Positions 1-39,459 of a DNA stretch of 39,459 nt are shown here, in pieces. The DNA lies in contig JBLWGC010000172.1 in assembly GCA_048772705.1 (NCBI GenBank), forward strand, positions 1-39,459, read 5' to 3'. Origin of the DNA: Leidyana gryllorum EB-2025a (lineage: Eukaryota; Protista; Apicomplexa). The notes below the pieces were generated by a model. That model had not been told where the DNA came from, made no database searches, and saw nothing but the letters and a program-made list of their open reading frames with translations. Position numbers and translations under genes: made by a program. Every line of letters starts with the position of its first letter. The stretch's first letter is position 1.

Positions 1-54
1 CTCAGCTGCAGCTTTGGACGAGAGATAGAGCGTCGGGCCAACCGACAAGCAACG

Positions 55-126
55 GGGCCGTTCTGGGAATCGAACCCAGGACTTCTTCCACCCGTAGGAA
101 GAATCATACCACTGGACCAAACAGCC
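55..126 (-). pseudogene. tRNA-Pro(CGG), degenerate
   Basis: GGCTGTTTGGTCCAGTGG...CTTCC-TACGGGT-GGAAG; U33 replaced by A. Confidence 0.8.
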
Positions 127-214
127 GCCTGAGGTCGTGCAACGCGGTGAGCACAGTCGCGAGAGTGGTCATACGATGTTGAGAATCAACAAAATGCGAC
201 GGGGTCTGCACAAA

Positions 215-287
215 GGGCGACTAGCTCAAATGGTAGAGCGCTCGCTTAGCATGCGAGAGGTACTGGGATCGATGCCCAGGTCGTCCA
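215..287 (+). tRNA. tRNA-Ala(AGC); further copies 7862-7934(-), 20041-20113(-), 21394-21466(+), 25947-26019(+), 39262-39334(-)
   Basis: GGGCGAC...CTCGC-TT AGC AT-GCGAG...GTCGTCC-A; G3:U70 pair. Confidence 0.95.
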
Positions 288-568
288 AGCTTCGTAGTCT
301 GCAAGTGCCGCTTTTTTACTACAGAGTTGAAAGCTTTCAAGTGTGCCCTTTACCCTTGGCTAGACTCGGGCACCGCAGTATGTGTGAAGGTTGCCTCAGA
401 GCCCGGATTTCCGAGTTTGCATTTTACAATCACACACTCTGCCGACTAAGATACCAGAGTCAGTTACAATTTTTCAAAGGTCAGTAGAGAGACGCGTGTT
501 GCATGTGTCCAGTTGAGGGAGCGCTAGCCCGGATGGCTCTACCAACTCTTTTTTGGGAAGGACTGATC

Positions 569-640
569 GGTTACTTGGTGTAGTGGTTAGCACTGGAGAC
601 TCTAAATCTCCCGACCTAGGTTCGATTCCCGGAGCAACCT
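569..640 (+). tRNA. tRNA-Gln body with CTA (amber) anticodon; probably impaired; mirror at 38909-38980(-)
   Basis: GGAGA-CT CTA AA-TCTCC, anticodon 602-604; A5:C68 and one T-stem A:C mismatch. Confidence 0.8.
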
Positions 641-703
641 CAAAACTAGTCCTCACTTTTTCGTGAAACCTCGCCACTTCTCTTGGTCTGCGGGACCTTC
701 GCC

Positions 704-776
704 GCAGCCATGATCTGGTGGTCACCACGTTTGCTTAACACGCAGAAGGTCCCGAGTTCGATCCTCGGTGGCTGTA
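704..776 (+). pseudogene. tRNA-Val(AAC), degenerate D arm
   Basis: Val body GCAGCCA...TGGCTGT-A with loop TT AAC AC. Confidence 0.75.
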
Positions 777-1364
777 GCTCGCAACTTTCAGCGACAACCA
801 AATGAGACAATCTTAAGGGGAATCAACTGTGCTCTGAAACCAAGCATCGAATCCGGGTATTCCGCGTGACAGGCGGAAATACTGACCAGACTTTTGGGGT
901 TGAAGTCCGGTGCGTTGACGAGCGTCCGAGATGAAATAGTTCCTTCTCGAGACTTCACCGACACAAAACATGCCATGTGGCGAGCCAAGAACACGGCGGC
1001 AAGATGGCCGGGTGGTCTGAAGCGCTGTGTTCAGGCCGTAGTTCTAAATCGCGTGGGCTCTAATCTCACGCTTGTCATGCATACTATGTCAAAAACCACG
1101 GAATGCTATGACGTCTGCACAGCGGGCGACTAGCTCAACGCTGGATTGTGCATCTGTGGTCTAGTGGTAGAATGTCTCGTTGCCACCGAGACAACCCAGG
1201 TTCGATTCCCGACAGACGCAGGAGGCACGCCTCAAACCGCCGTGGCAAATTAACAGAAACGCTAACAACCTGGGTCGGCACGAGGCCGGGGCATTCTGAC
1301 ACTTGATGTAACAACCCCCTGACATAGAATCGAATGTGAGTTACGCGGTGGCACGGCGGTGATC

Positions 1365-1438
1365 GCTCCCCTAGCTCAGCTGGTTAGAGCATCGGCCTTA
1401 TGTGCCGAAGGTCGAGGGTTCGATCCCCCCGGGGAGCA
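1365..1438 (+). tRNA. tRNA-Ile(TAT), intronless; better-paired copy at 17214-17287(-)
   Basis: GCTCCCC...TCGGC-CT TAT GT-GCCGA...GGGGAGC-A. Confidence 0.9.
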
Positions 1439-2053
1439 AATCCACCCAATGACAGCCGAACGCGACCGCCGAGTACTCCAGCATTTGACACCTATGAGTG
1501 CCCTAGCCGGGCAGGCCGACCAGGAGGCTGTTTGACCGTAAGGTATCATTCTCCCTCGCTTGGAAGAACGTTGCAAGTGGGTGTTGTAGCTCAGTCGGCA
1601 GAGTCCACCCCCTAACCACTCGGGCAAGTTGCCACCTCCAACTGGGCATCTTGCGCCCAGTGCCGTCACATACGGTTCAGCAAGCTCGACTCGGACGTCT
1701 CGCGCTGCCCGAACCTGCGGTCTCCCCTTGCGCTCTACCGACGGACTGGGGGCGGCAACGAAGCTCGGACTTAGTAACAAATTCCATTCGTATTGATCGT
1801 TGGGAATTTGGGCCTTCCTCGGGTACACGGCGAGTATCAGAGATGCACTCACTTGGTCACGCCCGGGCTCCAACCGCGGACTCAGAACTTATTAGGCTCA
1901 CGCTCTGGCCGCCTGAAATACGCGACCGCTTCAGCGTTGATGTGAACAGTCACTAGCCGAAGGGTGTTCAGCAAAGCCTTATGATTGGTACTGAACCGGC
2001 CACTACCAATTCGCACGGGATTCCCGATGGAAGGCGTAGCCCGTTCCACTCTC

Positions 2054-2135
2054 GAGAAGGTGGCCGAGCGATTAAGGCGGCGGCCTGCTAAGCCGTTGGG
2101 TTTCACCCGCGTGAGTTCGAATCTCACCCTTGTCG
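2054..2135 (+). tRNA. tRNA-Ser(GCT), acceptor-stem mismatch; degenerate copy 12129-12210
   Basis: GCGGC-CT GCT AA-GCCGT, long variable arm, G discriminator. Confidence 0.8.
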
Positions 2136-2316
2136 GTTGCATTTGAGAAAAAGCGCAACTGCTTCAAGGATTTAAGTGAGCTTTCTGTCCCACCCAAATC
2201 CAACGCCTACGCTGGGCGCTTTATACAGGAGCGACTTAAAATATTTCAGAGGTCAGTAGAGACCCGTGTTGCGTGTGTCCAGTTGAGGAACAGACTCTTC
2301 TGGGATGGGCTGAGCC

Positions 2317-2388
2317 GGTTGCGTCGTGTAGTGATTAGCACTGGAGACTCCGAATCTCCCGACCTGGGTTCGATTCGCGGCGCGACCT
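2317..2388 (+). pseudogene. tRNA-Gln body with CCG anticodon (mirror copy at 37161-37232 retains CTG)
   Basis: GGAGA-CT CCG AA-TCTCC; D- and T-arm substitutions. Confidence 0.75.
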
Positions 2389-2741
2389 TGGAACTGGTCC
2401 TCACTACTCCCTGAAACTTCGCCATGTCTTGGGCTGCGGGGACCATCCGTGCAGCAATGGTCTAGTGGTTACGACGTCTGCTTCGCACGCAGAAGTCCCG
2501 ATTTCGATCCTCGGTGGCTGTAGCTCGCAACTTTCAGCGAGAACCCGAAGCAGAGAATCTCAAGGGAAACCATCTGCGTTTCGAGACCGGGAATCGAACG
2601 CGGGTCTTCCGCGTGACAGGCGGAGACACTAAACACTATACTGACTCGGACGCTCCGAACACGCCGGCCTCCAATCCCAGAAGTCTTTCTATTTCGGCTC
2701 ACGGACAAAAAACGCGTGGAGCGACGAACCAACAAGACTGC

Positions 2742-2821
2742 GGCAAGATGGCCGAGTGGTCTAAGGCGCTGTGTTCAGGCCGCAGTCCGAAAGGGCGTGG
2801 GTTCGAATCCCACTCTTGTCA
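2742..2821 (+). tRNA. tRNA-Leu(CAG)
   Basis: GGCAAGA...CTGTG-TT CAG GC-CGCAG, long variable arm, TCTTGTC-A. Confidence 0.95.
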
Positions 2822-2891
2822 GCCGTTGTATTGTATTGGTAGGTAGTCCCCTCTCTTCACTGATAGACAGGTCGTTCGAGCTACATACGGC

Positions 2892-2962
2892 TGCACCTGC
2901 CGGGACTCGAACCCGGGTTACGACCTTGGAAGGGTCGCATCTTACCCTTAGACCACAAGTGC
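2892..2962 (-). tRNA. tRNA-Gly(TCC); copies 13184-13254(-), 36587-36657(+)
   Basis: GCACTTG...CGACC-CT TCC AA-GGTCG...CAGGTGC-A. Confidence 0.93.
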
Positions 2963-3112
2963 AATTGCGAAAGAGTTGCAGCACCCCGAGACACTCGGGC
3001 GATTTCTGCGCGCCACCGTCCGCCATACACCCAAAATTGTCCACCGACTTCAAACTCATTGGCATGTGGTCAGGGATGGATTTCCAACATCTTCAACCTT
3101 CAGGTCATCTTT

Positions 3113-3184
3113 AGGGCACGCGCGGAGTTGAACCACGGACTTGCTGATCTGCAGTCAGCTGCTCTACCACTGAGCTACGTACCC
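3113..3184 (-). tRNA. tRNA-Cys(GCA); mirror 36365-36436(+)
   Basis: GGGTACG...GCTGA-CT GCA GA-TCAGC...CGTGCCC-T. Confidence 0.9.
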
Positions 3185-3280
3185 ACAAAACACCCGTCAT
3201 ACTCGCTCAACTCGATTTTGTCTTCTCGTTTGAAGCAAAACGGCCGTTATTGTGCACGAGCTTGAACAACAACGAGTCAT

Positions 3281-3351
3281 GCATCTGTGGTCTAGTGGTA
3301 GAATGTCTCGTTGCCATCGAGACGACCCGGGTTCGATTCCCGGCAGATGCA
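3281..3351 (+). tRNA. tRNA-Gly(GCC); copies 10868-10938(-), 36198-36268(-), degenerate 1150-1220
   Basis: GCATCTG...TCTCG-TT GCC AT-CGAGA...CAGATGC-A. Confidence 0.95.
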
Positions 3352-3990
3352 GAAGACACATGATTGTTTTCCCACCATTCCAGGGATTCACGCTTGAGTT
3401 GGTGTTTGACCCCTCCAACCACATCGCACGACAACTGCTGGATTTGAACGCAACTTGTCCCATCGGGTGAACCGACGACCAAGAGGGCTGTGCTGGGAAT
3501 CGAACCAGGACTCCACCCTGAGGAGGGGTCATAGCACTAGACCAAACAGCCCATCGGTCGGTGGTGCAAATGGCTGGTACAGTCGAGAGACTGGTCATAA
3601 TATGTCAAGAACCACTAAATGCTATGGGGTCTGCACAGCGGAATGATACAGCACAGCCACGACCGATGGAGTTGATGCCCGTCACATAACACGACAACTG
3701 CTGGATTCGAACCAGCGCGGGCCAGGCCCAATAGACTTCTAGACTAACCCCTTAACCACTCGGGCAAGTTGCCACCTGTCGAATTCGACATGTCGCGGAA
3801 GTGACCAAATACCCCCATGTTCAGCCTGCCCTGCGGCATTGATAGATGTCTAAACTGACCTCTCGCGTGCAAAGTCACCGCTCTACCACTTGAGATTGCC
3901 GCCGACCCGCCAAACCTAGGTGAACTTCCAATCTGAGACCGACTCACAGTTCTCTGGCGAATCATTCGTCAGTGCAACTGTTGTGACTCG

Positions 3991-4063
3991 TCCACTGTAG
4001 TCTAAGTGGCTAGGATATGCGGCTCTCACCCGCACGATCCGGGTTCAAGTCCCGGCAGTGGAA
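3991..4063 (+). tRNA. tRNA-Glu(CTC); copies 6541-6613, 26352-26424, 27995-28067(-) and others
   Basis: TCCACTG...TGCGG-CT CTC AC-CCGCA...CAGTGGA-A. Confidence 0.95.
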
Positions 4064-4942
4064 CTCCAGCTGAGTGTGCTTGTAGGCAACAGTTCCATTC
4101 TTACTCCCAGGGAAATAGATGCACACCGCCCGCGGGGCTCGCCCCCTCAACTGCAAGATTAAGAGTCTTGCGCTCTACCGACTGATCTAGGGTGGCAGGA
4201 ATGCAAGGACACAAAACCCGATAGCCCGACATCTTAAGTGGCTTTGGTACCCACCAGCCTCACTGGAAGATTGTCCGGGTCGTCTAGTTGCTTACAACAG
4301 CAAGTTGTGGCCGTGCATACCCAGGCCCGAATCCTGGCTTGGATAGTATGTCCCCGAATGGGAGATGTGGGTGAAGTCTGTCCACACCCACCATCGGGCG
4401 TAGCTGCCCATGTCCTGTCTTGATCGCTACACACTCCCATTTGACGGCTCCGTTAGTCGGCGCTATGGCCTAATAGATATGGCATCGGTCTACGGAACCG
4501 GGGATTCTGGGTTCGAGTCCCAGTAGCGTCTGGGCGGATGGCCGGGTTGCAGCCTGTTGAGTCAACAACTCAGATCCTGCCCTTAGCTGTCCGGGATGGG
4601 TCGAGTGCCGTGTTGGGTCAACAACTATCAGACGGGCTGTTCTGGGAATCGAATCCAGGACTCCTTCCACCCTGAGGAGGGATCATAGCACTAGACCAAA
4701 CAGCCCATCGGTCGGTGGTGCAAATGGCTGGTACAGTGGGGAGACTGGTTATAATATGTCAAGAACCACTAAATGCTATGGGGTCTGCACAGCGGGCGAC
4801 TAGCTGGAATGATATAGCACTCGCTCAGCATGCGAGAGATACTGGGATGGATGCCCAGGTCGTCCAAACTTCTAACGGCTACACCTGCGGTATTTGAAAA
4901 CAGAGTCACGACCGAATGGAGTTGATGCCCGATCACATAACA

Positions 4943-5024
4943 CGACAACTGCTGGATTCGAACCAGCGCGGGCCAGACCCAGTAGATTTCAAGTCTACCC
5001 CCTTAACCACTCGGGGAAGTTGCC
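4943..5024 (-). tRNA. tRNA-Ser(TGA); mirror 24716-24797(+)
   Basis: GGCAACT...GTAGA-CT TGA AA-TCTAC, long variable arm. Confidence 0.88.
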
Positions 5025-5238
5025 AACTGTCGAATTCGACATGCCGCGAGGAGTGACCAAATACCCCTATGTTCAGCCTGTCCTGCGGCATTGATAGGTG
5101 TCTAAACTGACCTCTCGCGTGCAAAGTCACCGCTCTTCCACTTGAGATAGCCGCCCACCCGCCAAACCTAGGTGAACTTCCCACGATCGACTCACAGTTC
5201 CCTGGCGCCTCATTCGTCAGTGCAACTGTTGTGACTCG

Positions 5239-5311
5239 TCCACTGTAGTCTAAGTGGCTAGGATATGCGGCTTTCACCCGCACGATCCGGGTTCAAGTCC
5301 CGGCAGTGGAA
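5239..5311 (+). tRNA. tRNA-Glu(TTC); copies 15509-15581, 16002-16074, 24429-24501(-)
   Basis: Same body as Glu(CTC), loop CT TTC AC. Confidence 0.95.
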
Positions 5312-7487
5312 GTCATTAGAGTACTCGATCAAAGTGCTTTAATAGCTTGTGTCAATAGGAACTGATGGGTGACTCCCGGCTTGCATTGCCTTCTTAGCTT
5401 AGGGGCAGAACATTCGCTTAAGCGAAAGGTCGCCGGTTCGATTCCGGCAGAAGGCTTTGCTCACAAGCTTAAGCTTTTCGGGCTGGTCTCTCGGTCTCGA
5501 TAACGACCTGAGGGGGTTGCAAAATTCTCAGGCCTTTTCTGCCCCCATTCGTCAGTGCAACTTTGGTGACTTGTCCACTATAGTCTCGTTGGATAGTATA
5601 TGCGGCGCCAACCCGCACCATCCCGGTTCGAGTCTCGGCAGCGCAAATGCAGCTGGGTGTGCTTGTAGGCAACATACTGCATTCTTACTCCCCGGCCCAC
5701 TCGTCCGCACCGCCCACGGGACTTCACTTTGCGACTGCAAGATTAAGAGGCTCGCGCTCCACCGACTGAGCTAGGACGACAAGGAAACTCTAAACTAAGT
5801 TACACTCTATTTGCCTCAGGGTGGAGTCATGCAAGTCATTGGGCAGGTCGACCGGAGTCCTTAATATTTTCGCGCGTCACGCGGAAGACCTGGGTCGAGC
5901 TCGTTCCGCTTTAGACTTCTTTTGGTGCTCACTCAAAAGGTGCGGTTCGGGAGCAAACCTCGATGTCCAAGGGTCACACGACAGGCGTTCGCTCACTTGG
6001 TACAGCATCTGACTGCGGCGGGTGCGGCAGGTAGTCGACCGTTCCATTCCCCTCGCCCGACACTTGCCTCCTTATGCGAGAAGTGGGGTTCGAACCCACG
6101 CGGAATTAACCAGTGGATCTTAAGGCCACCCCCTTAACCTCTCGGGCATTCTCGAAATGGAGCGTCTAGACAAGTAGTCTGGGGTTTCTGCGGGTAGTCA
6201 GTGCCCTTTCAAGGCGCGAGAAAGATACTCACGACCATGTGAGTGGCGTCTGAGAAATAGCGCCTTACCCACTAGGGCATCTTGCCACATACTGGTAGGC
6301 GCAAGTCTGCATGGTGCGGGTCCCATTCTGCGCAACGGTACTCATTTCAGGACGGAATTAGCCATCACTTCGAGTTTACGGCTGTACGTAGCCAGTTGTA
6401 TCCCCCTTCCCATTCGGCTGTTTGGTCTAGTGGTATGATTCCACGGGTGGAAGAAGTCCTGGGTTCGATTCTCAGAACAGCCCCGTTGGTTCAGGTCAAG
6501 AGGGTACGGCTCTCGGCTAAAGCTGCAGCTAAGGGAGTTGTCCACTGTAGTCTAAGTGGCTAAGATATGCGGCTCTCACCCGCACGATCGGGGTTCAAGT
6601 CCCGGCAGTGGAAATCCAGCTGAGTGTGCTTGCAGGCAACAGTTCCATTCTTACTTCCAGGGATATAGATCCACACCGCCCGCGGGGCTCGAACCCGCGA
6701 CTGCAAGATTAAGAGTCTTGCGCTCTACCGACTGAGCTAGGGCGGCAGGAATGCAAGGACAAAAAACCCGATAGCCCGACATCTTAAGTGGCTTTGGTAC
6801 CCACCAGCCTCACTTGAAGATTGTCGGGTCGTCTAGGTGCTTACAACAGCAAGTTGTGGCCGTGCATACCCAGGCACGAATCCTGGCTTGGATAGTATGT
6901 CCACCGATGTCTCGAATGGGAGATGTAGGTGAAGTTGTCCAAACCCACCATCGGGCGTAGCTGCCCATGTCCTGTCTTGATCGCTACACACTTCCATTTG
7001 ACGGCTCCGCAAGTCGGCGCTATGGCCTAATGGATATGGCATCGGTCTACGGAACGGGGATTCTGGGTTCGAGTCCCAGTAGCGTCTGGGCGAATGGCCG
7101 GGTTGCAGCCTGTTGAGTCAACAACTCATATCCTGTCTTAGCTGTCCGGGATGGGTCGAGTGCCGTGTTGGGTCAACAACTATCAGACGGGCTGTTCTGG
7201 GAATCCAACCCAGGACTCCTTCCACCCTAAGGAAGGATCATACCACTAGACCAAACAGCCGCCTAGCCGGTGGTTCAACCCGCTGGGTACAGTCGAGAGA
7301 CTCGTGCACAGAGGGAGGCTATCCCAGATGATGAAACGGTGCTTAGTATATGAAAGGTTCTGGGATCGAGTCTCAGCCCATCCGAACTACATAGATGGAA
7401 CCCTCGCCGGAGTAGTCTAGTTGGCCTATCAACGCTGTCTGCCAAAACCATCAGGTTGAGTAGTACTTTGGCAATAACCACTCTACT

Positions 7488-7567: not shown

Positions 7568-7686
7568 CCGTCCAACTGCTCCGGGGTTCGAACGGCTCAA
7601 CCTCAGACCCTCAACAGTGGCGGGCTGCAAAATTCTTCGGTAGAAGATGAAGGATCTCCCTACTAACCTCTGAAAGATTGTCACTG

Positions 7687-7759: not shown

Positions 7760-8195
7760 AGTTCTGCGGCACCGTACTCTCTAGACGGTACTTGTGCTCT
7801 TGGACCCTTCCAAGGTCGCAAATATGTATTTAAACACCGGCAGTTGCAGCCGTACGTACTTTGGACGACCTGGGCATCGATCCCAGTACCTCTCGCATGC
7901 TAAGCGAGCGCTCTACCATTTGAGCTAGTCGCCCATTGTGCAGACCCCATCGCATTTTTTTGTTCTCAACATCGTATGACCACTCTCTCGACTGTACCCA
8001 GCGGGTTGAACCACCGGCTAGGCGGCTGTTTAGTCTAGTGGTATGATCCTTCCTTAGGGTGGAAGGAGTCCTGGGTTCGATTCCCAGAACAGCTCGTCTG
8101 ATAGTTGTTGACGCAACACGGCACTCGACCCATCCGGGACAGCTAAGACAGGATCTGAGTTGTTGACTCAAAGGCTGCAACCCGGCCATTCGTCC

Positions 8196-9442: not shown

Positions 9443-9514
9443 AGCAGTGTAGCTCAGTGGAAGAGTGTTGGGCTCATAACCCAAAGGTCCGTCGATCGAA
9501 ACGACGCACTGCTA
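9443..9514 (+). tRNA. Initiator tRNA-Met(CAT); intact copies 18935-19006(-), 27734-27805(+)
   Basis: A1:T72, three G:C pairs in the anticodon stem (TTGGG-CT CAT AA-CCCAA), T-loop ATCGAAA. Confidence 0.95.
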
Positions 9515-9714: not shown

Positions 9715-9787
9715 GCCGCCCTAGCTCAGTCCGTAGAGCGCAAGACTGCTAATCTTGCAGTCGCGGGTTCGAGCCCCGCGGGCGGTG
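9715..9787 (+). pseudogene. tRNA-Lys body with GCT anticodon
   Basis: CAAGA-CT GCT AA-TCTTG; D-loop GG changed to CG. Confidence 0.75.
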
Positions 9788-10198
9788 CAAATCAATGTCT
9801 CTGGGAGTAAGAATGGAACCGTTGCCTACAACCAAACTCTGGTGGATTTCCACTGCCGGGACTTGAACCCGAATCGTCCTGGTGAAAGCCCCATATCCTA
9901 GCCACTTAGACTCCAGTGGACGAGTGGTTGAGTGGTTGAGTTGGGCTTCGGCCGAGAGCCGTACCGTCCTGGAAAACATGGTATGCCGGCGTGATCAAGT
10001 GAGTCGATCTCTGATACAGATTCGGACGTAGTAACCAATTCCATTTGTATTGATCGTGGAATCTTGGGCCTTCCTCGGGTACGGGGCGAGCTTCCTTGCC
10101 GCCCCAACTCCGTCGAGATCGGGCGGCGCGAGGAGTCCTAGTAAAGCTCGCTGAACCGTATGTGAAGCCACTGGCCGCAAAATGCTAAGTTCAACAGC

Positions 10199-12464: not shown

Positions 12465-12653
12465 TGGAACTGGTCCTCACTACTCCCTGAAACTTCGCCA
12501 CTTCTCTTGGGCTGCGGGGACCATTCATGCAGCCACGGTCTAGTGGTTACGACGTCTGCTTACCACGCAGAAGGTCCCGAGTTCGATCATCGGTGGCTGT
12601 AACACGCATCGTTCAGGTGAGCATCACGAAATCTAAAGCGGAAGACGATCTAT

Positions 12654-25786: not shown

Positions 25787-25858
25787 GGGCTGTTCTGGGA
25801 ATCGAACCCAGGACTTCTTCCACCCGAAGGAAGAATCATACCACTAGACCAAACAGCC
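25787..25858 (-). tRNA. tRNA-Pro(CGG)
   Basis: CTTCC-TT CGG GT-GGAAG, all stems paired. Confidence 0.94.
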
Positions 25859-29155: not shown

Positions 29156-29189
29156 GTTTGGATCCTGCCACGTGCAGCCGTATGTACTT

Positions 29190-29262
29190 TGGACGACCTG
29201 GGTATCGATCCCAGTACCTCTCGCATGCGAAGCGAGCGCTCTACCATTTGAGCTAGCCGCCC
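29190..29262 (-). tRNA. tRNA-Ala(CGC)
   Basis: CTCGC-TT CGC AT-GCGAG. Confidence 0.93.
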
Positions 29263-30213
29263 AGAGGCACAACATGGAAGAGCTATTGCATTGAGTAGCT
29301 GACCGGATGACAATACAACGGTTGACAAGAGTGAGATTCGAACCCACGCCCTTTCGGACTGCGGCCTTAACACAGCGCCTTAGACCACTCGGCCATCTTG
29401 CCGGAGTGCTCTTGGCTCGCCGCTTTACACGTTTTCTGTTCGTGAGTCAAAATATAAAGACTGCTGGGATTGGAGGCTGGCGTGTATTTCCGCTTATCAC
29501 GCGGAAGACCAGGGTCGATTCCCGGTCTCGGAGCACACTTGGTTGCGCTTAGGATTGTTTCCTTTGGTTCTCGCTGAGAGTTGCGAGCTACAGCCACCGA
29601 GGATCAAACTCGGGAACTTCTGCGTGTGAAGCAGACGTCGTGACCACTAGACCATGACTGCACGGAGCTTGCGGACTGGGAAAAAAGGCGTGTGTCTCTG
29701 GAAACACGTAACCTGATGACCTACTTGAAGGAGCGCTAGTCCGATGGCTCTACCAACTCCTTTTTGGGAAGGACTGAATGGGTTGCGTGGTGTAGTGGTT
29801 AGAACTGGAGACTCTGAATCTCCCGACCTGGGTTCGATTCCCGGCGCGACCTCAAAACTAGTCCTCACTACTTCGTAAAACCTCGCCACTTCTCTTGGTC
29901 TGCGGGTCCTTCGCTGCAGCCATGGTCTAGTGGTAACGACGTCTGCTTCACACGCAGAAGGTCCCGAGTTCGATCCTCGGTGGCTGTAGCTCGCAACGTT
30001 CAGCGGGAACCAAAGGGGGAATCTTAAGCGAAATCAACTGTGTGCTCCGAGACCGGGAATCGAACCCGGGTCTTCCGCGTGACAGGCGGAAATACTAACC
30101 ACTATACTATCTCGGACGCTCGCAAACTACGCCGGCCTTCAGCCTCAGACGTCTTACCAGTTTCGAGATTCTACGGACGGAAAATGTGTAGAGCGGCGAG
30201 CCACAAACACTCC

Positions 30214-30293
30214 GGCAAGATGGCCGAGTGGTCTAAGGCGCTGTGTTGAGGCCGCAGTCCGAAAGGGCATGGGTTCGAATCCCACTCTTGTCA
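30214..30293 (+). tRNA. tRNA-Leu with GAG anticodon; second such copy at 36728-36807(-)
   Basis: CTGTG-TT GAG GC-CGCAG, anticodon 30248-30250. Confidence 0.85.
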
Positions 30294-31030
30294 GCCGTTG
30301 TATCGGCACTCGGTCAGTTTCTGGATGCAATAGGTCTTCCGTGTAGTGCGGATGGGCGGCTAGCTCAGATGGTAGAGCGCTCGCTTTGCATGCGAGAGGT
30401 ACTGGGATCGATACCCAGGTCGTCCAAACTCAGTAGGGCGGCACCTGCTGGTCGTTAAATACAGAGTTGCGAGCTCTAAGAGAGAGTCGGGTATCGCGGC
30501 TCCCGGTACTGCTGGGCTTCGAAACTCGGACTTTGTGGTGAACAGCTACACGCTTTGCCGACTGAGCTACAGGACCCATTTGCAATGTTTCAGAGGTCAG
30601 TTTGGAGACCCTCCGCTTTCTACCGCAGGATTCTGCAACCCCTTTGTTGTAGGTTCACCAGACCACGTCTTGTCAAGAGGATACGGCTCTCGCTAAAGCT
30701 GCAGCTGAGGAGGTTGTCCACTGTAGTGTGAGTGGCTAGGATATGCGGCTCCCACCCGTACGATCCGGGTTCAAGTCCCGGCTGTGGAAATGCAGCTGAG
30801 TGAGCTTGTAGGTAACAGTTCCATTTTTACTCCAACGGAGATAGATCCACACCGCCCGCGGGGCTCGAACCCGCGACTGCAAAATTAAGAGTCTTGCGCT
30901 CTACCGACTGAGCTAGGGCGGCAGGAAAGCAAGGACACAAAACCCGACAGCCTGACATTTGAAGTGGCTCCGCTCTCAGAGCTGGTACCCACAGGTCGTT
31001 CGCGTGACAGGCGGGACTACTCTTTGATAC

Positions 31031-31631
31031 TGTTGTAGTTCGTATTTGCCGATAATCAACTTCCTATCGGGTTGCCAAATTCGACTCGGTGAAATTTCCA
31101 ATCGAATTAACATCCATCTGGATACTTCCCTACATATTTGGCACTTATATAGGGGCATGTATAAGATGGTGAAAAGGCATTATTAACGAACGTAAAGCAA
31201 CTACTACTGAAGCGTAAAGGCTAATGCACCCTAGTGGTCTGAACTCTCTGTGACAGTGTAACTGTGCAGACACTCGCATGAATGATCAGAGTGTGGTATC
31301 GGGGAGAACTACCATGTGTGTCCGGCGCGAGGCTCCGCAAGAGTGCGAGCGACTGGCACATGGGTGGAGTGAGAGAGACACCAGAGTGAGAGACACACGC
31401 GAGCAAAGTTGGCTAAGTCAGATTTGGACTAGGCAAGAGGCGGCCTAAGATAACTTTTGCACTTGGTAGAACAAGTCGTAGTTCTTGTTTTGCGCCGTCG
31501 TGTGCGACATATTCGTGGTAGACTTGTCGGCAAAAATACTAACTGGGTTCTAAGTCTGACTTGTGGTCGAAAGTATGCAGAGATGAGAACTGGGCCTCGT
31601 TCCCCTCGAGTAGCGACTTGGGGTTACAACA
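31031..31631. mobile_element. Solo LTR (601 bp), different family from 28342-29155
   Basis: TGTTGTA...TACAACA termini; 5-bp TSD GATAC at 31026-31030 and 31632-31636; interrupts a fossil tRNA-Asp. Confidence 0.9.
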
Positions 31632-31854
31632 GATACCATGTCGGAGGCGCCTGACCCCCAACCTTAGAGCCCAGCCTATCCATTCTCTAGCTTCAAACAG
31701 ACAGGGAACAATTGAAGTGGCGGGACAGAAACCGAGCTGGTAAGATGGCTGAGGGGTCTAAGGCGCTGTATGCAAGTCGCACTCCGAGAGGACGTGGGTC
31801 CAAATCCCACTCTTTTCAGGTTGCGCCTCACACGGGAAAAAGAAAGGGTCTGAT

Positions 31855-31926
31855 TGAGCCCAGAGTGATTCGAAAACCCAACCTTCTGATCTGGAGTCAG
31901 ACGCGTTGCGCCATCGGCCCAAGACC
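31855..31926 (-). pseudogene. tRNA-Trp(CCA), degenerate 5' half
   Basis: TCTGA-CT CCA GA-TCAGA with T arm remnant. Confidence 0.7.
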
Positions 31927-31974
31927 ATCCCCGCTCCAGACTCATTACTTTGTGGTGAGCGATGGACGTGTCAG

Positions 31975-32045
31975 GCATCTGTGGTCTAGTGGTAGAATGT
32001 CTCGTTGCTATCGAGACGACCCGGGTTCGATTCCCGGCAGATGCA
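31975..32045 (+). tRNA. tRNA-Gly body with GCT anticodon
   Basis: Identical to Gly(GCC) 3281-3351 except C>T at 32009. Confidence 0.8.
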
Positions 32046-32779
32046 GAGGAGATAATCCATGGTTGGTTTTGCCACATTCCAGGGTTTCACGGGTCAGTTG
32101 GTGTCTGACCCTTCAATCACATCGCACGACAACTGCTGGATTTGAACCAGCGCGGGCCAGGCCCAGTAGATTTCTAGTCTACCCCCTTGAACACTCGGGC
32201 AAGTTGCCACCTGTCGAACTCGGCATTTAGCGGCCAGTGGCTTCACATACGGTTCAGCAAGCTTGACTCGGACTGCTGGCGCTGCCCGAACCCGCGGTCT
32301 CTCCATTGAAAGTTTTGCGCTCTACCGACAGAGCTGGCGCGGTAGGGAAGTGAGGACTTTATAACACGTACCTTTCGTATTGGTCGCAGAATGTTGAGGG
32401 TTGCTCGAGTGCAGGGCGACTCTTTATCGAAGATCCACTCACTTGGTCACGCCCGGGCTCGAACCGGGGACGTTGAGCTTATTAGGCTCACGCTCTAGCC
32501 GACCGAGCTACGCGACCACTTCTGCCACGAGAGATGGCACCGAGCCGGATGCTGGATTCCCCCACTCCTCGCCGCATGGCGAAATCGACAGTAGCCAACT
32601 TGCCCGAGTGGGGAAGGGGGGTAGACCGGAATTTATGCGTAAGTTGGTGTCTGACCCCTCCAATCATATCGCACGACAACTGCTGGATCTGCACCAGCGC
32701 GGCCCAGGCCCAGTTGAATTCTGTGGTGGAAATGATGCTATGCCCAGCATCAAACCCTCATATGGATCGAGACAGGGAG

Positions 32780-33870
32780 TGCCTTTTTAGCTTAGGGGCA
32801 GAGCATTCGCTTAGTAAGCGATGGGTCGCCGGTTCGATTTCGGCAGAAGGCTTTGCTCACAAGCTTAAGCTTTTCGGGCTGGTCTCTCGGTCTCGATGAC
32901 GACCTGAGGGGGTTGCAAAATTCTCAGGCCTTTTCTGCCCCCATTCGTCCGTGCAACTTTGGTGACGTGTCCACTATGGTCTCGGTGGCTAGTATATGCG
33001 GCGCCAACCCGCACCATCCCGGTTCGAGTCTCGGCAGCGCAAATGCAACTGGGTGTGCTTGTAGGCAACATACTGCATTCTTACTCCCCGGCCCACTCGT
33101 CCGCACCGCCCACGGGACTTCACTCTGCGACTGCAAGATTAAGAGGCTCGCGCTCCACCGACTGAGCTAGGACGACAAGGAAACTCGTTACACTCTATTT
33201 GCCTCAGGGTGGAGTCATGCAAGTCATTGGGCAGGTCGACCGGAGTCCTTAGTATTTTCGCGCGTCACGCGGAAGACCTGGGTTCGACTGCCGGTCTTAC
33301 AGCACAGCTCGTTCCGCTTTAGACTTCGTTTGGTGCTCACTCAAAAGGTGCGGTTCGGGAGCAAACCTCGATGTCCAAGGGTTACACGACAGGCGTTCGC
33401 TCACTTGGTACAGCATCTGACTGCGGCGGGTAGTCGACCGTTCCATTCCCCTCCCCTTATGCGAGAAGTGGGGTTCGAACCCACGCGGAATTAACCAGTG
33501 GATCTTAAGGCCACCCCCTTAACCTCTCGGGCATTCTCGCAATGCAGCGTCGAAAAAAGTAGTCTGGGGTTTCTGCGGGTAGCCAGTGCCCTTTCAAGGC
33601 GGGAGAAAGATACTCACGACCATGTGAGTGGGGTCTGAAAATAGCGCCTTACCCACTAGGGCATCTTGCCACATACTGGTAGGCGCAAGTCTGCATGGGT
33701 GCGGGCCCCATTCTGCGCAACGGTACTCATTTCAGGACGAATTAGCCATCACTTCGAGTTTACGGCTGTACGTAGCCGGTTGTATCCCCCTTCCCATTCG
33801 GCTGTTTGGTCTAGTGGTATGATTCTTCCTTTGGGTGGAGAATTCCTGGGTTCGATTCCCAGAACAGCCC
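32780..33870 (+). repeat. Third, more diverged direct copy of 5390-6480 module
   Basis: Near-identical translated text at 5457..5774 and 32853..33170; same degenerate Glu/Lys/Leu(TAA) order with indels. Confidence 0.88.
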
Positions 33871-34911
33871 TCTTGGTCGTCGGTTGACCCGACGGGACAA
33901 GTTGCCTTCAGAACCAATACAGCCACCTCGTTAGCCCACTTCGGTAGGGCAGTCTGCACCCTACTAAAAAAGGACTGTTCGGGAATCGAATTGAGCACTT
34001 CCTGCGAGTGGAGGAAAATTATATCACGAGCACTTCAACTCGACATGCGCAGCAGTGGCCCCCATACAGCTAGCAAGCTTGCCTCGGTCGAAACGGAACG
34101 TCTTCCGCGTGCGAGGCTATGATGCGGATGGCCATATCCATTAGGCCACCGCACCATAGACAAGCTTTGGTCATCTCGGGAGCTTGTCCACTGTAGTCTA
34201 AGTGGCTAGGATATGCCGCTTTCACCCGCACGATCCGGGTTCAAGTCCCGGCAGTGGAAGTTACTCGAGCAAAGTGCTCCAGTAATCCCCGTCAATAGTA
34301 ACTGATTCGTGATCTTCGGCTTGGATTGCCTTCTTAGCTTAGGGGCAGAGCATTCGATTAGTAAGCGAAAGGTCGCCGGTTCGATTCCGGCAGAAGGCTT
34401 GCTCACGAGCTCAAGCTTTTCTGGCTGGTCTCTCGAGTCTCGATAACGACCTGAGAGGGCTGCAAAATTCTTCGGTAGAAGATGAAGGATCTCTCTACTA
34501 ACCTCTGAAAGATTGTCAATGGGTCTGGTAGCTCAGTCGGCAGAGCGTGTGGCTGTTAACCACAAAGTCGCAGGCTCGAAACCTACCAGGACCGGTTCTG
34601 CGGCACCGTACTCTCTAGACGGCACTTGTGCTCTTGGACCCTTCCAAGGTCGTAAAAATACCGGCAGTTGAAAACTACGAAGTTTGGACGACCTGGGCAT
34701 CGATCCCAGTACCCTCGCATGCTAAGCGAGCGCTCTACCATTTGAGCTAGTCGCCCATTGTGCAGACCCCATCGCATTTTTTTGTTCTCAACATCGTATG
34801 ACCACTCTCTCGACTGTATTCAGCGGGTTTCACGACCGACAGGCGGCTAATTGGTCTAGTGGTATGATTCTTCCTTCGGGTGGAAGAAGGCCTGTATTCG
34901 ATTCCCAGAAG

Positions 34912-37900
34912 AGCCCGTCTGATAGTTGTTGACGCAACACGGCACTCGACCCATCCCGGACAGCTAAGACAGGATCTGAGTTGTTGACTCAACAGGCTGC
35001 AACCCGGCCATCCGCCCAGACGCTACTGGGACTCGAACCCAGAATCCCCGGTTCCGTAAACCGATGCCATATCTATTAGGCCATAGCGCCGACTAACGGA
35101 GCCGTCAAATGGGAGTGTGTAGCGATCAAGACAGGACATGGGCAGCTACGCCCGATGGTGGGTGTGGACAGACTTCACCCACATCTCCCATTCGGGGACA
35201 TACTATCCAAGCCAGGATTCGGGCCTGGGTATGCACGGCCACAACTTGCTGTTGTAAGCAACTAGACGACCCGGACAATCTTCCAGTGAGGCTGGTGGGT
35301 ACCAAAGCCACTTAAGATGTCGGGCTATCGGGTTTTGTGTCCTTGCATTCCTGCCGCCCTAGATCAGTCGGTAGAGCGCAAGACTCTTAATCTTGCAGTT
35401 GAGGGGGCGAGCCCCGCGGGCGGTGTCCATCTATTTCCCTGGGAGTAAGAATGGAACTGTTGCCTACAAGCACACTCAGCTGGAGTTCCACTGCCGGGAC
35501 TTGAACCCGGACCGTGCGGGTGAGAGCCGCATATCCTAGCCACTTAGACTACAGTGGACGAGTCACAACAGTTGCACTGACGAATGATTCGCCAGAGAAC
35601 TGTGAGTCGGTCTCAGATTGGAAGTTCACCTAGGTTTGGCGGGTCGGCGGCAATCTCAAGTGGTAGAGCGGTGACTTTGCACGCGAGAGGTCAGTTTAGA
35701 CATCTATCAATGCCGCAGGGCAGGCTGAACATGGGGGTATTTGGTCACTTCCGCGACATGTCGAATTCGACAGGTGGCAACTTGCCCGAGTGGTTAAGGG
35801 GTTAGTCTAGAAGTCTATTGGGCCTGGCCCGCGCTGGTTCGAATCCAGCAGTTGTCGTGTTATGTGACGGGCATCAACTCCATCGGTCGTGGCTGTGCTG
35901 TATCATTCCGCTGTGCAGACCCCATAGCATTTAGTGGTTCTTGACATATTATGACCAGTCTCTCGACTGTACCAGCCATTTGCACCACCGACCGATGGGC
36001 TGTTTGGTCTAGTGCTATGACCCCTCCTCAGGGTGGAGTCCTGGTTCGATTCCCAGCACAGCCCTCTTGGTCGTCGGTTCACCCGATGGGACAAGTTGCG
36101 TTCAAATCCAGCAGTTGTCGTGCGATGTGGTTGGAGGGGTCAAACACCAACTCAAGCGTGAATCCCTGGAATGGTGGGAAAACAATCATGTGTCTTCTGC
36201 ATCTGCCGGGAATCGAACCCGGGTCGTCTCGATGGCAACGAGACATTCTACCACTAGACCACAGATGCATGACTCGTTGTTGTTCAAGCTCGTGCACAAT
36301 AACGGCCGTTTTGCTTCAAACGAGAAGACAAAATCGAGTTGAGCGAGTATGACGGGTGTTTTGTGGGTACGTAGCTCAGTGGTAGAGCAGCTGACTGCAG
36401 ATCAGCAAGTCCGTGGTTCAACTCCGCGCGTGCCCTAAAGATGACCTGAAGGTTGAAGATGTTGGAAATCCATCCCTGACCACATGCCAATGAGTTTGAA
36501 GTCGGTGGACAATTTTGGGTGTATGGCGGACGGTGGCGCGCAGAAATCGCCCGAGTGTCTCGGGGTGCTGCAACTCTTTCGCAATTGCACTTGTGGTCTA
36601 AGGGTAAGATGCGACCCTTCCAAGGTCGTAACCCGGGTTCGAGTCCCGGCAGGTGCAGCCGTATGTAGCTCGAACGACCTGTCTATCAGTGAAGAGAGGG
36701 GACTACCTACCAATACAATACAACGGCTGACAAGAGTGGGATTCGAACCCACGCCCTTTCGGACTGCGGCCTCAACACAGCGCCTTAGACCACTCGGCCA
36801 TCTTGCCGCAGTCTTGTTGGTTCGTCGCTCCACGCGTTTTTTGTCCGTGAGCCGAAATAGAAAGACTTCTGGGATTGGAGGCCGGCGTGTTCGGAGCGTC
36901 CGAGTCAGTATAGTGTTTAGTGTCTCCGCCTGTCACGCGGAAGACCCGCGTTCGATTCCCGGTCTCGAAACGCAGATGGTTTCCCTTGAGATTCTCTGCT
37001 TCGGGTTCTCGCTGAAAGTTGCGAGCTACAGCCACCGAGGATCGAAATCGGGACTTCTGCGTGCGAAGCAGACGTCGTAACCACTAGACCATTGCTGCAC
37101 GGATGGTCCCCGCAGCCCAAGACATGGCGAAGTTTCAGGGAGTAGTGAGGACCAGTTCCAAGGTCGCGCCGCGAATCGAACCCAGGTCGGGAGATTCAGA
37201 GTCTCCAGTGCTAATCACTACACGACGCAACCGGCTCAGCCCATCCCAGAAGAGTCTGTTCCTCAACTGGACACACGCAACACGGGTCTCTACTGACCTC
37301 TGAAATATTTTAAGTCGCTCCTGTATAAAGCGCCCAGCGTAGGCGTTGGATTTGGGTGGGACAGAAAGCTCACTTAAATCCTTGAAGCAGTTGCGCTTTT
37401 TCTCAAATGCAACCCACAAGGGTGAGATTCGAACTCACGCGGGTGAAACCCAACGGCTTAGCAGGCCGCCGCCTTAATCGCTCGGCCACCTTCTCGAGAG
37501 TGGAACGGGCTACGCCTTCCATCGGGAATCCCGTGCGAATTGGTAGTGGCCGGTTCAGTACCAATCATAAGGCTTTGCTGAACACCCTTGGGCTAGTGAC
37601 TGTTCACATCAACGCTGAAGCGGTCGCGTATTTCAGGCGGCCAGAGCGTGAGCCTAATAAGTTCTGAGTCCGCGGTTGGAGCCCGGGCGTGACCAAGTGA
37701 GTGCATCTCTGATACTCGCGCTGTACCCGAGGAAGGCCCAAATTCCCAACGATCAATACGAATGGAATTTGTTACTAAGTCCGAGCTTCGTTGCCGCCCC
37801 CAGTCCGTCGGTAGAGCGCAAGGGGAGACCGCAGGTTCGGGCAGCGCGAGACGTCCGAGTCGAGCTTGCTGAACCGTATGTGACGGCACTGGGCGCAAGA

Positions 37901-39459
37901 TGCCCAGTTGGAGGTGGCAACTTGCCCGAGTGGTTAGGGGGTGGACTCTGCCGACTGAGCTACAACACCCACTTGCAACGTTCTTCCAAGCGAGGGAGAA
38001 TGATACCTTACGGTCAAACAGCCTCCTGGTCGGCCTGCCCGGCTAGGGCACTCATAGGTGTCAAATGCTGGAGTACTCGGCGGTCGCGTTCGGCTGTCAT
38101 TGGGTGGATTTGCTCCCCGGGGGGATCGAACCCTCGACCTTCGGCACATAAGGCCGATGCTCTAACCAGCTGAGCTAGGGGAGCGATCACCGCCGTGCCA
38201 CCGCGTAACTCACATTCGATTCTATGTCAGGGGGTTGTTACATCAAGTGTCAGAATGCCCCGGCCTCGTGCCGACCCAGGTTGTTAGCGTTTCTGTTAAT
38301 TTGCCACGGCGGTTTGAGGCGTGCCTCCTGCGTCTGTCGGGAATCGAACCTGGGTTGTCTCGGTGGCAACGAGACATTCTACCACTAGACCACAGATGCA
38401 CAATCCAGCGTTGAGCTAGTCGCCCGCTGTGCAGACGTCATAGCATTCCGTGGTTTTTGACATAGTATGCATGACAAGCGTGAGATTAGAGCCGACGCGA
38501 TTTAGAACTACGGCCTGAACACAGCGCTTCAGACCACCCGGCCATCTTGCCGCCGTGTTCTTGGCTCGCCACATGGCATGTTTTGTGTCCGTGAAGTCTC
38601 GAGAAGGAACTATTTCATCTCGGACGCTCGTCAACGCGCCGGACTTCAACCCCAAAAGTCTGGTCAGTATTTCCGCCTGTCACGCGGAATACCCGGATTC
38701 GATGCTTGGTTTCAGAGCACAGTTGATTCCCCTTAAGATTGTCTCATTTGGTTGTCGCTGAAAGTTGCGAGCTACAGCCACCGAGGATCGAACTCGGGAC
38801 CTTCTGCGTGTTAAGCAAACGTGGTGACCACCAGATCATGGCTGCGGCGAAGGTCCCGCAGACCAAGAGAAGTGGCGAGGTTTCACGAAAAAGTGAGGAC
38901 TAGTTTTGAGGTTGCTCCGGGAATCGAACCTAGGTCGGGAGATTTAGAGTCTCCAGTGCTAACCACTACACCAAGTAACCGATCAGTCCTTCCCAAAAAA
39001 GAGTTGGTAGAGCCATCCGGGCTAGCGCTCCCTCAACTGGACACATGCAACACGCGTCTCTCTACTGACCTTTGAAAAATTGTAACTGACTCTGGTATCT
39101 TAGTCGGCAGAGTGTGTGATTGTAAAATGCAAACTCGGAAATCCGGGCTCTGAGGCAACCTTCACACATACTGCGGTGCCCGAGTCTAGCCAAGGGTAAA
39201 GGGCACACTTGAAAGCTTTCAACTCTGTAGTAAAAAAGCGGCACTTGCAGACTACGAAGTTTGGACGACCTGGGCATCGATCCCAGTACCTCTCGCATGC
39301 TAAGCGAGCGCTCTACCATTTGAGCTAGTCGCCCTTTGTGCAGACCCCGTCGCATTTTGTTGATTCTCAACATCGTATGACCACTCTCGCGACTGTGCTC
39401 ACCGCGTTGCACTACCTCAGGCGGCTGTTTGGTCCAGTGGTATGATTCTTCCTACGGGT
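34912..39459 (-). repeat. Right arm of outer inverted repeat IR1; carries mirror copies of all tRNAs in 90-4637
   Basis: Reverse complement of 90-4637; cut by the window end. Confidence 0.97.

Follow-up and report, generated by a model that had tools for sequence, protein, structure and literature searches.

Mega-clusters of vertebrates, such as that on zebrafish chromosome 4, contain thousands of tRNA genes and pseudogenes in repeat-rich, heterochromatin-like DNA shaped by segmental duplication; the zebrafish genome is 1.4 Gb in size and has many dispersed tRNA genes beside the mega-cluster. The centromeric tDNA of S. pombe consists of a handful of genes that flank a defined centromere core and act as TFIIIC barriers. 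Ty3 of yeast and DGLT-A and TRE of Dictyostelium are tRNA-associated retrotransposons. In Arabidopsis, clustered tDNAs (Tyr-Tyr-Ser and Pro units) are epigenetically silenced and lie beside a dominant dispersed, expressed set (PMC7544208). In Entamoeba, arrays account for over 10% of a small genome and contain almost all tRNA genes; they are built from homogeneous head-to-tail units of 1–5 tRNAs with microsatellite-like intergenic repeats (PMC2652664; bioRxiv 10.64898/2026.07.06.736064).

The stretch of DNA analysed here (the window) is the complete contig C172 (39,459 bp) of the gregarine-like apicomplexan Leidyana gryllorum EB-2025a, in which 144 tRNA genes were identified using ARAGORN. Like Entamoeba, the organism is a protist parasite that seems to have almost all of its tRNA genes in arrays, and these occupy over 10% of its small genome. 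Within the arrays of both lie other Pol III/snRNA genes (here a U6 gene); in neither are canonical telomere repeats evident, and the arrays are tied to chromosome or contig ends. Unlike the arrays of Entamoeba, that of C172 has no unit: three two-copy tandems, random orientation, about 20 intermixed families and many pseudogenes were observed. One metagenomic relative (L035/L036), by contrast, resembles a 2.9-kb repeating unit. The locus shares with zebrafish chromosome 4 the occurrence of tRNA genes and pseudogenes in segmentally duplicated regions, but the genome is only 15.5 Mb and no dispersed tRNA set was found in a scan of contig C2 or among the listed matches to a B-box followed by T5. 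As in the tandemly amplified Arabidopsis clusters, gene copy number is far above need, so that it may be asked which of the copies are expressed; unlike in those clusters, CpG depletion is not seen (observed/expected 0.86–0.88). Large inverted repeats enclose tRNA genes as at S. pombe centromeres, but here hundreds of genes are present per contig, with no core, symmetry axis or B-box-specific constraint. On balance, the window is probably an assembled fragment of the nuclear tRNA complement, amplified in scrambled arrays, the huge copy number being neutral or selfish.

Composition of the array

The census covers 19 amino-acid families and initiator tRNA-Met, as the initial annotation had stated, with genuine initiator genes at three sites. 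Some of the copies counted are anticodon-mutated pseudogenes. Rfam RF00005 gave 144 matches at or above the gathering score, 99 of them with at least 50 bits. tRNA-His was not found among the 144 genes of the window and is present in other arrays of the assembly. The genes, eight weak Rfam-only extras and 91 relics form a scrambled two-strand array over the whole contig (1–39459); positions 7872–7930 lie inside a tRNA-Ala(AGC) gene. Recognizable tRNA sequence amounts to ∼43% of the window (tRNA-like genes 28.8%, the 91 relic fragments in the spacers 13.8%) and the remainder is repeated spacer without recognizable tRNA resemblance; the description of the window as almost wholly tRNA-derived was therefore overstated. 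No notable ORFs were found in the window, and GC content is even along it (0.54).

Spacers between genes have a median length of 140 bp, within the 40–150 bp first proposed, but their 10–90% range (59–394 bp) extends well beyond it. The 143 gene junctions comprise 39 divergent, 39 convergent and 65 tandem pairs, and the 78 strand switches are in line with chance for randomly oriented genes. Head-to-head and tail-to-tail pairs do occur, but they are not the rule. The original observation was largely right in that this is a real, dense tRNA array, with the details corrected as above.

A canonical initiator tRNA-Met gene (A1:U72, GGG/CCC anticodon stem, A54/A60) is located at 9443–9514 (+). Identical copies with the same features are found at 18935–19006 (−) and 27734–27805 (+), and a degenerate copy at 25248–25319. 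A tRNA-Gln body with one acceptor-stem mismatch and the amber-reading anticodon CTA (569–641, +) is mirrored at 38908–38980 (−). Shifted anticodons were also found in a Gly-GCC body carrying GCT, one edit from canonical (31975–32045, +), a Lys body with GCT (9715–9788), a Gln body with CCG (2317–2388) and Val bodies with CGC (2450–2524) and ACC (12528–12603). Identity to a recurrent canonical sequence was observed for only 25 of the 144 copies.

The tRNA genes of the arrays have no adjacent oligo-T terminator, unlike the U6 gene embedded in a neighbouring array, which ends in T6. A T4 run occurs within 40 nt downstream of 23 of the 144 window genes, compared with 16 of 144 in the upstream control. 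For 748 array tRNAs, T4 within 25 nt was found in 5–8%, and the first T4 run follows at a median distance of 319 nt (299 nt from random positions). Transcription would then pass beyond the gene, with 3′ ends generated by processing of the RNase Z type; just as well, the lack of terminators could reflect silence of the majority of copies.

Duplication of multi-gene blocks

The array was assembled from multi-gene blocks (0.3–4.8 kb) that were duplicated, inverted and deleted. In the outer inverted repeat, arm A (90–4579, +) has 15 mismatches in 4490 nt (99.67% identity) to the reverse complement of arm A′ (34970–39459, −), which ends at the contig end within a tRNA-Pro gene; the gapped alignment of arm A continues to 4872 at lower identity. 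In the inner repeat, arm B (4655–6902, +; gapped alignment 4634–7305) has 10 mismatches in 2248 nt (99.56% identity) to the reverse complement of arm B′ (22838–25085, −; gapped alignment 22459–25105). With 15 and 10 substitutions between them, the arms are separate copies. On the left A and B are directly adjacent, whereas B′ and A′ are separated by ∼9.6–9.8 kb (25106–34678) flanked by tRNA-Pro genes at 25034–25107 and 34845–34916. A three-way alignment places the A/B joint in a tRNA-Pro(AGG) gene (4633–4706, −): the left copy tracks A′ until the T-arm of the gene is reached, and B′ thereafter. The youngest event in the window was the copying of a 7-kb block in inverted orientation, with this internal joint within the tRNA-Pro gene. 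Such a joint is the product of template switching, or of homologous recombination, between tRNA genes at dispersed sites.

The nested inverted repeats of the initial annotation exist, but they are imperfect and their centres (19774.5 and 14870) are offset by the 9.8-kb insertion, leaving the window with no shared symmetry axis. Self-alignment gave 354 inverted and 333 direct HSPs (36 and 32, respectively, at lengths of at least 300 bp), and 85.8% of the window lies within repeats of at least 150 bp. Neither orientation prevails among the duplications: the locus is scrambled and not palindromic in any specific way. In age, the duplicates form a continuum, with identities from ∼80 to 99.7%. Only three tandems were found, each of two copies; the only sizeable local one is 493 bp × 2 (92% identity; 15169–16156, +), and another is 139 bp × 2 (99%; 18628–18907). 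The genes have no encoded CCA and the spacers were duplicated together with them, and the copying is therefore at the DNA level and not at the RNA level.

Each outer arm holds canonical Ala-AGC (215), Ile-TAT (1365) and Cys (3113) genes alongside dead Gln-CTA (569), Gln-CCG (2317) and Val-CGC (2450) copies and weak matches at 2579 and 4124 (37.6 bits for the degenerate gene at 4124–4196, −), which confirms that intact and dead copies were co-amplified within nested inverted repeats. As the units of duplication are multi-gene blocks, dead copies travel with live ones. The early decay of copies is neutral, as seen from young duplicates, the anticodon shifts and the 91 relics: in duplicates of at least 96% identity, tRNAs have diverged about as much as spacers (0.013/0.011, 0.010/0.021 and 0.033/0.028). 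Over longer times tRNA sequence was retained 2–4 times better than spacer (∼0.06 versus ∼0.25 in duplicates of 80–90% identity), which may partly reflect ascertainment or gene conversion instead of selection.

It is unlikely that the long-range structure is an assembly artefact, with real local tRNA clusters joined into the 39-kb order and palindrome by a wrong path through the repeat graph. The window is an entire small contig, its right arm meets the contig end inside a tRNA gene, and a sister contig, C199, begins at the same base, has 4,142 bp in common with it and then follows another path. However, the arms differ at 25 positions and are not a single sequence traversed twice. C199:1–4142 is a third copy of block A, with three differences from the left arm and 14 from the right, as fits three distinct copies; the differences between the contigs are biologically clean, one of them being an LTR element flanked by a target-site duplication, and a joint within a tRNA gene is expected of real recombination.

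A chromovirus in a sister copy

The LTR element of C199 (4143–9020) is a 4.9-kb Ty3/Gypsy chromovirus with identical 194-bp LTRs (TG..CA ends) and ORFs for gag and pol (PR-RT-RH-IN-chromodomain). Its 5-bp target-site duplication, CTCGC, corresponds to window 4138–4142 (+), and the window therefore carries the empty site; the degenerate tRNA-like gene at 4124–4196 is the one whose C199 counterpart carries the retrotransposon. The primer-binding site contains a 14-nt perfect complement of the 3′ end of the array initiator tRNA plus CCA. The element, primed by the array's own initiator tRNA, has inserted very recently into the sister copy of block A, and the primer match together with the identical LTRs gives a hint that array tRNA is expressed. 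In its family, its 5-bp duplication, its initiator-tRNA priming and its position in or near tRNA genes, it resembles tRNA-associated LTR elements. Unlike Ty3, DGLT-A and TRE, it lies inside a tRNA-like gene and not at a specific position upstream, and its chromodomain integrase suggests that chromatin, and not Pol III, directs integration. The empty/filled site pair, the primer-binding site match and the contrast between the T6 of U6 and the T-runs of the tRNA genes are new.

That the arrays are a chromosome-structure platform of dense B-boxes, the first role proposed in the initial annotation, seems improbable. The 295-kb contig C2 starts within an array adjoining a Gypsy element, and C43 and C123 likewise begin with arrays and have Gypsy copies further in. 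The element in the sister copy has an integrase of the chromodomain type, which prefers heterochromatin in other organisms. No telomere repeat (TTTAGGG × 3, TTAGGG × 4 or TTYAGG(G) × 3) was found anywhere in the assembly, which was counted in favour of such a platform, although telomeres may be unassembled or of another type. The arrays of Entamoeba provide a precedent (PMC2652664; bioRxiv 10.64898/2026.07.06.736064). However, assemblers break at repeats, and arrays at contig ends tell little about chromosome ends. The proposed role also lacks sequence support in the genes themselves: the divergence of variant copies from canonical is 3.9% in the T-loop and T-stem and 2.6–4.3% in acceptor stems, the A and B boxes decaying at the same pace as the acceptor stems.

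It is doubtful, too, that the arrays persist as a landing pad that keeps LTR-element insertions out of genes by absorbing them, the part played by tRNA genes for Ty3 in yeast and for TRE and DGLT-A in Dictyostelium. The site pair at 4138–4142 with its identical LTRs is one such insertion; 282 first-look candidates came from a pol search, with numerous hits on array contigs (C13, C27, C62, C72, C98 and C123), and a Gypsy pol ORF starts ∼540 bp past the final tRNA of the array on C2. Against this, no RT or integrase remnant was found in the window and only one element in 183 kb of other arrays, and the LTRs of the C199 element belong to a family of just ∼4–5 copies. As the only insertion mapped falls within a dead tRNA gene and not at a fixed upstream distance, targeting is putative. 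Insertion is observed; the suggested retrotransposon sink is an outcome of it and only putatively a function.

A source of sense/antisense tRNA small RNAs is very unlikely: Pol III running through absent terminators into neighbouring genes (first T4 at a median of 319 nt, beyond the median spacer of 140 bp), the convergent pairs (39 of 143 junctions) and the long inverted repeats could give double-stranded RNA, but a single adjacent same-family inverted pair in the window makes local hairpins rare, and the near-identical arms lie 16–30 kb from each other.

Scale of the arrays and their probable role in tRNA supply

Supply of tRNA from amplified arrays, the reading favoured here, was considered at the scale of the assembly, in which 11,591 first-look tRNA candidates were obtained. 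The B-box pattern GGTTCGANNCC matched 5,021 sites, compared with 115 for a control pattern, and 82 of the 5,021 are in the window. Extrapolation from the GGTTCGANNCC density of the window gives ∼2.4 Mb of array and ∼8,800 genes. The complement would be roughly 9,000–11,000 copies in ∼2.4 Mb, some 16% of the 15.5-Mb assembly, a count that haplotype or variant contigs such as C199 may inflate. Every sampled stretch (C174, C61, C5, the end of C217, C1 and C3) contains ∼40 tRNAs per 10 kb, and tRNA-His is present in them. An Asn half-gene has 144 exact copies in the assembly; of the 100 matches listed, each is either on a small contig or within the initial 40 kb of C43 or C123.

The check for dispersed tRNA genes consisted of the B-box pattern on one 295-kb contig and the B-box-plus-T5 pattern among the matches listed. 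The gene-bearing contig C2 (294,728 bp) has six B-box matches, all within 1443–4813 in its terminal 5-kb array, and the pattern search found no tRNA-type B-box in the other 289 kb; the reading that fits best is therefore that the arrays are the tRNA supply. T5 follows 121 of the 5,021 B-boxes. Among the matches listed, which reach C201 (the 1.6-Mb contig C230 lies outside them), all are on array contigs, and no terminator-bearing tRNA gene is on the large contigs C2, C33, C35, C104 or C159.

The arrays seem to hold all of the tRNA genes of the organism. The initial annotation had reasoned that tRNA supply is unlikely to be the sole reason for a locus that amplifies dead copies. This is unsupported: blocks of 0.3–4.8 kb carry dead copies with live ones, and the arrays come close to being the only place where tRNA genes are found, every family occurring in them and the B-boxes of C2 being terminal only. 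Selfish amplification, which it had suggested, and neutral amplification are compatible with the birth-and-death pattern. The arrays would be the cell's source of tRNA, of which only a minority of near-canonical copies would matter. Dead copies would be passengers of block duplication and not a sign of another function, and the huge copy number would be the product of a neutral or selfish recombination ratchet rather than an adaptation.

The tRNA arrays of the window and of the assembly

The window comprises contig C172 in full. Its transfer RNA genes were counted using ARAGORN, which returned 144 genes, and using the Rfam tRNA covariance model, which returned 144 matches at or above the gathering score of 29 bits; of these matches, 99 score at least 50 bits. 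Nineteen amino-acid families are represented, and His is absent from the window. Three identical initiator genes, at 9443, 18935 and 27734, carry the eukaryotic hallmarks A1:U72, a GGG/CCC anticodon stem and A54/A60. The initial annotation had counted 19 families plus the initiator, and this census is correct. The Rfam search of the window found the tRNA family and no other RNA family; no open reading frame longer than 198 residues was found in it, and its GC content (0.54) is flat along the contig. The internal B box of tRNA genes is present, with the T-arm word GGTTCGANNCC occurring at 82 sites in the window. As in tRNA genes of the eukaryotic type, CCA is not encoded: it is not among the 12 commonest three-nucleotide words downstream of the window genes (AGT, GTC, GTT and others), and none of these genes is followed by C at +1. 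No upstream or downstream motif common to the 112 non-redundant flanks was found. The tRNA-like genes take up 28.8% of its length, and when the spacers were searched by sensitive BLAST with the window's own tRNAs, 91 further relics (tRNA fragments) were recovered, amounting to 13.8%. Recognizable tRNA sequence thus makes up about 43% of the window, which had been described as almost wholly tRNA-derived.

The assembly comprises 15.5 Mb in 237 contigs, and the tRNA model gave 11 591 first-look candidates in it. The B-box word occurs 5021 times, against 115 occurrences of a control pattern. Extrapolation from the 82 window sites gives about 2.4 Mb of array with about 8800 genes, corresponding to about 16% of the genome. 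Every stretch sampled on contigs C174, C61, C5, C1 and C3 and at the end of C217 is array of the same kind, and His genes are present there. In contig C2 (295 kb) all B-box matches lie inside a terminal 5 kb array, which abuts a Gypsy pol gene. A 182 bp sequence past the last ARAGORN tRNA of this array was considered as a solo LTR and rejected, as it is ordinary array spacer following Arg-TCT genes. In the array-mapping search, the sole match to an exact Tyr half-gene pattern was the window's own copy.

HSP70 similarity gives weak support for a gregarine-like organism. When proteins of like length are compared, the HSP70 encoded on a 1.6 Mb contig is closest to those of Gregarina niphandrodes and Protomagalhaensia (77%), and 75–76% similar to those of Eimeria, Chromera and Vitrella. 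The HSP70 family, with 40 matches genome-wide, is expanded for a small genome, and paralogues form tandem clusters on contigs C230 (1577555–1594793), C104 (1252909–1268878) and C2 (201839–211179).

Layout and block duplication

The window genes are distributed between the strands at random (73 plus and 71 minus), with a median spacer of 140 bp. Tandem junctions number 65, against 39 divergent and 39 convergent, which does not agree with the head-to-head and tail-to-tail arrangement proposed initially. Duplications in the window are inverted as often as they are direct, and TRF found tandem repeats of 493, 139, 31 and 13 bp only, each in two copies. The array is scrambled and is not palindromic by design, contrary to the label that it had been given. 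The nested inverted repeats reported earlier do exist as two long pairs, although their arms are imperfect. The outer arms A and A′ (90–4579 and 34970–39459) differ at 15 of 4490 positions, and the inner arms B and B′ (4655–6902 and 22838–25085) at ten of 2248. These differences favour separate copies over a single sequence that the assembler walked twice. The remaining duplicates in the window are between about 80% and 97% identical. Among the 25 differences between 90–6902 and its inverted copies, ten (40%) are C↔G transversions, compared with 16% in older duplicates, and one site (1828–1829) is an adjacent CG/GC swap. This C↔G excess could be a polishing error or could reflect an odd mutation or repair process.

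In the assembled order, blocks A and B adjoin on the left and are separated by 9.8 kb on the right. In a three-way alignment the left copy tracks A′ until it reaches the T-arm of a tRNA-Pro gene (4633–4706) and then tracks B′, so that the joint of the youngest blocks lies inside a 72-nucleotide tRNA gene. A joint of this kind is what dispersed tRNA genes leave when they recombine homologously or serve in template switching. The duplicated units are multi-gene blocks that include the spacers. Block ends fall within 10 nucleotides of a tRNA edge in 41% of cases, compared with 15% expected; this excess was given no weight, since conserved tRNA edges are where alignments often end. Canonical genes (copies of a recurrent tRNA sequence) stand beside dead ones (degenerate or anticodon-shifted) in both arms, and the earlier observation that intact and dead copies are amplified together is confirmed.

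Two other routes of amplification were considered and ruled out. Copying through RNA would be expected to leave CCA or an A-tail, neither of which is found, and the spacers were duplicated together with the genes. An origin as a tRNA-derived SINE or as retro-copied pseudogenes is likewise rejected by the multi-gene nature of the blocks, which are not single units, and by the lack of CCA or an A-rich tail.

Terminators, decay and a chromovirus insertion

The array genes lack the oligo-T terminator of Pol III tRNA genes. In the window, T4 occurs within 40 nucleotides downstream of 23 of the 144 genes, and within the upstream control of 16. For 748 array tRNAs, T4 is found within 25 nucleotides downstream in 5–8%, and the median distance to the first T4 run (319 nucleotides) does not differ from that measured from random positions (299 nucleotides). 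Canonical copies are no better placed in this respect than other copies. Genome-wide, T5 follows 121 of the 5021 B boxes, mostly in one Gly-GCC module; among the matches listed, all T5-followed B boxes are on array contigs. A complete U6 snRNA gene (87 bits) lies inside the tRNA array of contig C61, on the minus strand at 12509–12612 (2509–2612 of the analysed stretch L021); it is preceded by an A/T-rich box and followed by a T6 terminator. Pol III genes of this organism can therefore carry normal terminators, and the U6 gene as an internal control for terminator absence is new.

Duplicates of at least 96% identity show about the same divergence in tRNAs as in spacers. In duplicates of 80–90% identity the tRNAs are conserved 2–4 times better than the spacers. 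Only 25 of the 144 window copies match a recurrent canonical sequence exactly, and 454 distinct sequences were counted among 678 tRNAs from other arrays. Several well folded copies have shifted anticodons: GCT is found on a Gly body and on a Lys body, CCG or CTA on Gln bodies, and CGC or ACC on Val bodies. The tRNA-Gln body with CTA, which would read amber, is present at 569–641 and 38908–38980 (51.9 bits, one acceptor-stem mismatch) and has probably begun to decay; the 694 tRNAs examined in other arrays include two further CTA tRNAs. Decay by methylation or by an RIP-like process was ruled out, as CpG observed/expected is 0.86–0.88, with no depletion. The differences between variant and canonical copies are spread about evenly along the molecule, and the A and B boxes have no special protection.

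A third copy of block A is present in the sister contig C199, whose first base coincides with that of the window; C199 shows three mismatches to window 1–4142 and 14 to the right arm. It then carries 4878 extra bases and rejoins the window at 4138. These extra bases make up a complete Ty3/Gypsy chromovirus with all the features of its class. Its 194 bp LTRs are identical to each other and have TG..CA ends, and its ORFs encode gag and a pol of the order protease, reverse transcriptase, RNase H, integrase and chromodomain (Pfam domains RVT_1, RT_RNaseH, Integrase_H2C2, rve, SH3_Tf2-1, Chromo, Retrotrans_gag and Ty3_capsid). The 5 bp target-site duplication, CTCGC, corresponds to window 4138–4142, and the window is the empty site. 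This empty/filled pair means that the arrays are still changing today. The primer-binding site is a perfect 14-nucleotide complement of the 3′ end of the array initiator tRNA plus CCA. As CCA is absent from the gene, the match hints indirectly that the cell makes and matures a tRNA with precisely the array-initiator sequence. C199 departs from the window at a second place, where it alone carries a 1.4 kb array block (C199 11677–13164, relative to window 6793–6803); it is 96% similar to window 30672–32350, and its breakpoint is in a spacer, beside the short repeated word TGGTACCCAC.

Related systems and candidate roles

Related mixed tRNA clusters were found in three metagenome contigs, with tRNAs that are 92–98% similar and spacers that are unrelated; T4 follows two of their 14 genes. 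Two metagenome contigs from a relative (L035, Ga0181472_103636, and L036, Ga0139313_103870) are circular permutations of one 2.9 kb unit with four tRNAs (Pro-like, Thr-CGT, Asn and Pro-AGG), which suggests a homogeneous tandem array of the Entamoeba style in that relative. Among known systems the tRNA arrays of Entamoeba come closest; there, too, nearly all tRNA genes lie in arrays, and these account for 10% or more of the genome (here about one-sixth by extrapolation, with C2 as a check). The Entamoeba arrays consist of a homogeneous tandem unit of 1–5 tRNAs with short tandem repeats in the spacers, whereas TRF shows no repeating unit here and order and strand are scrambled. Unlike the centromeric tDNA of Schizosaccharomyces pombe, with its small clusters, CENP-A core and symmetric inverted repeats, the window has no single axis of symmetry, and its inner arms are separated by 15 kb of array that is not palindromic. 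No description of such arrays in gregarines was found in the literature searched. Other apicomplexans have about 45–150 tRNA genes, and G. niphandrodes has 231 (table in PMC9250747).

The organism appears to have no tRNA genes outside the arrays, which must therefore be its tRNA supply. It had been argued that a locus amplifying dead copies is unlikely to serve this supply only. That argument finds no support here, as block duplication accounts for the dead copies with no need of a further function. Selfish or neutral amplification fits. Of the retrotransposon sink, insertion is established as a fact (in C199), and this does not extend to a function. A survey of the window together with 183 kb of further array turned up no element but the C199 chromovirus, whose LTR family is small. 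Related pol genes gave 282 first-look candidates in the assembly, many on array contigs. A source of sense and antisense tRNA small RNAs is a candidate role. A role in chromosome structure is conceivable, without support from the pattern of sequence constraint. Arrays begin three larger contigs (C2, C43 and C123), which may recall the location of Entamoeba arrays at chromosome ends, but a contig end is not a chromosome end. The even spread of differences along the tRNAs makes it less likely that the arrays are a platform kept solely for TFIIIC binding. Searches of the 15.5 Mb for the telomere repeats TTTAGGG ×3, TTAGGG ×4 and TTYAGG(G) ×3 gave no matches, which is not evidence of absence. In a composite reading, the arrays of this apicomplexan would be terminal or heterochromatic chromosome domains and a preferred landing ground of chromodomain retrotransposons, with terminator-less read-through sense and antisense tRNA RNAs feeding chromatin silencing; we regard it as quite unlikely.

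For genome projects, the locus illustrates why such assemblies break into about 200 small contigs. An apicomplexan of 15.5 Mb with about 9000 tRNA copies, which occupy about one-sixth of its assembly, represents extreme tRNA gene amplification. It provides a natural experiment in the recombination of tRNA genes, one crossover having been placed within a 72-nucleotide gene, in the tolerance of a cell for hundreds of anticodon-shifted tRNA genes, and in Pol III genes without oligo-T terminators beside a U6 gene with one.
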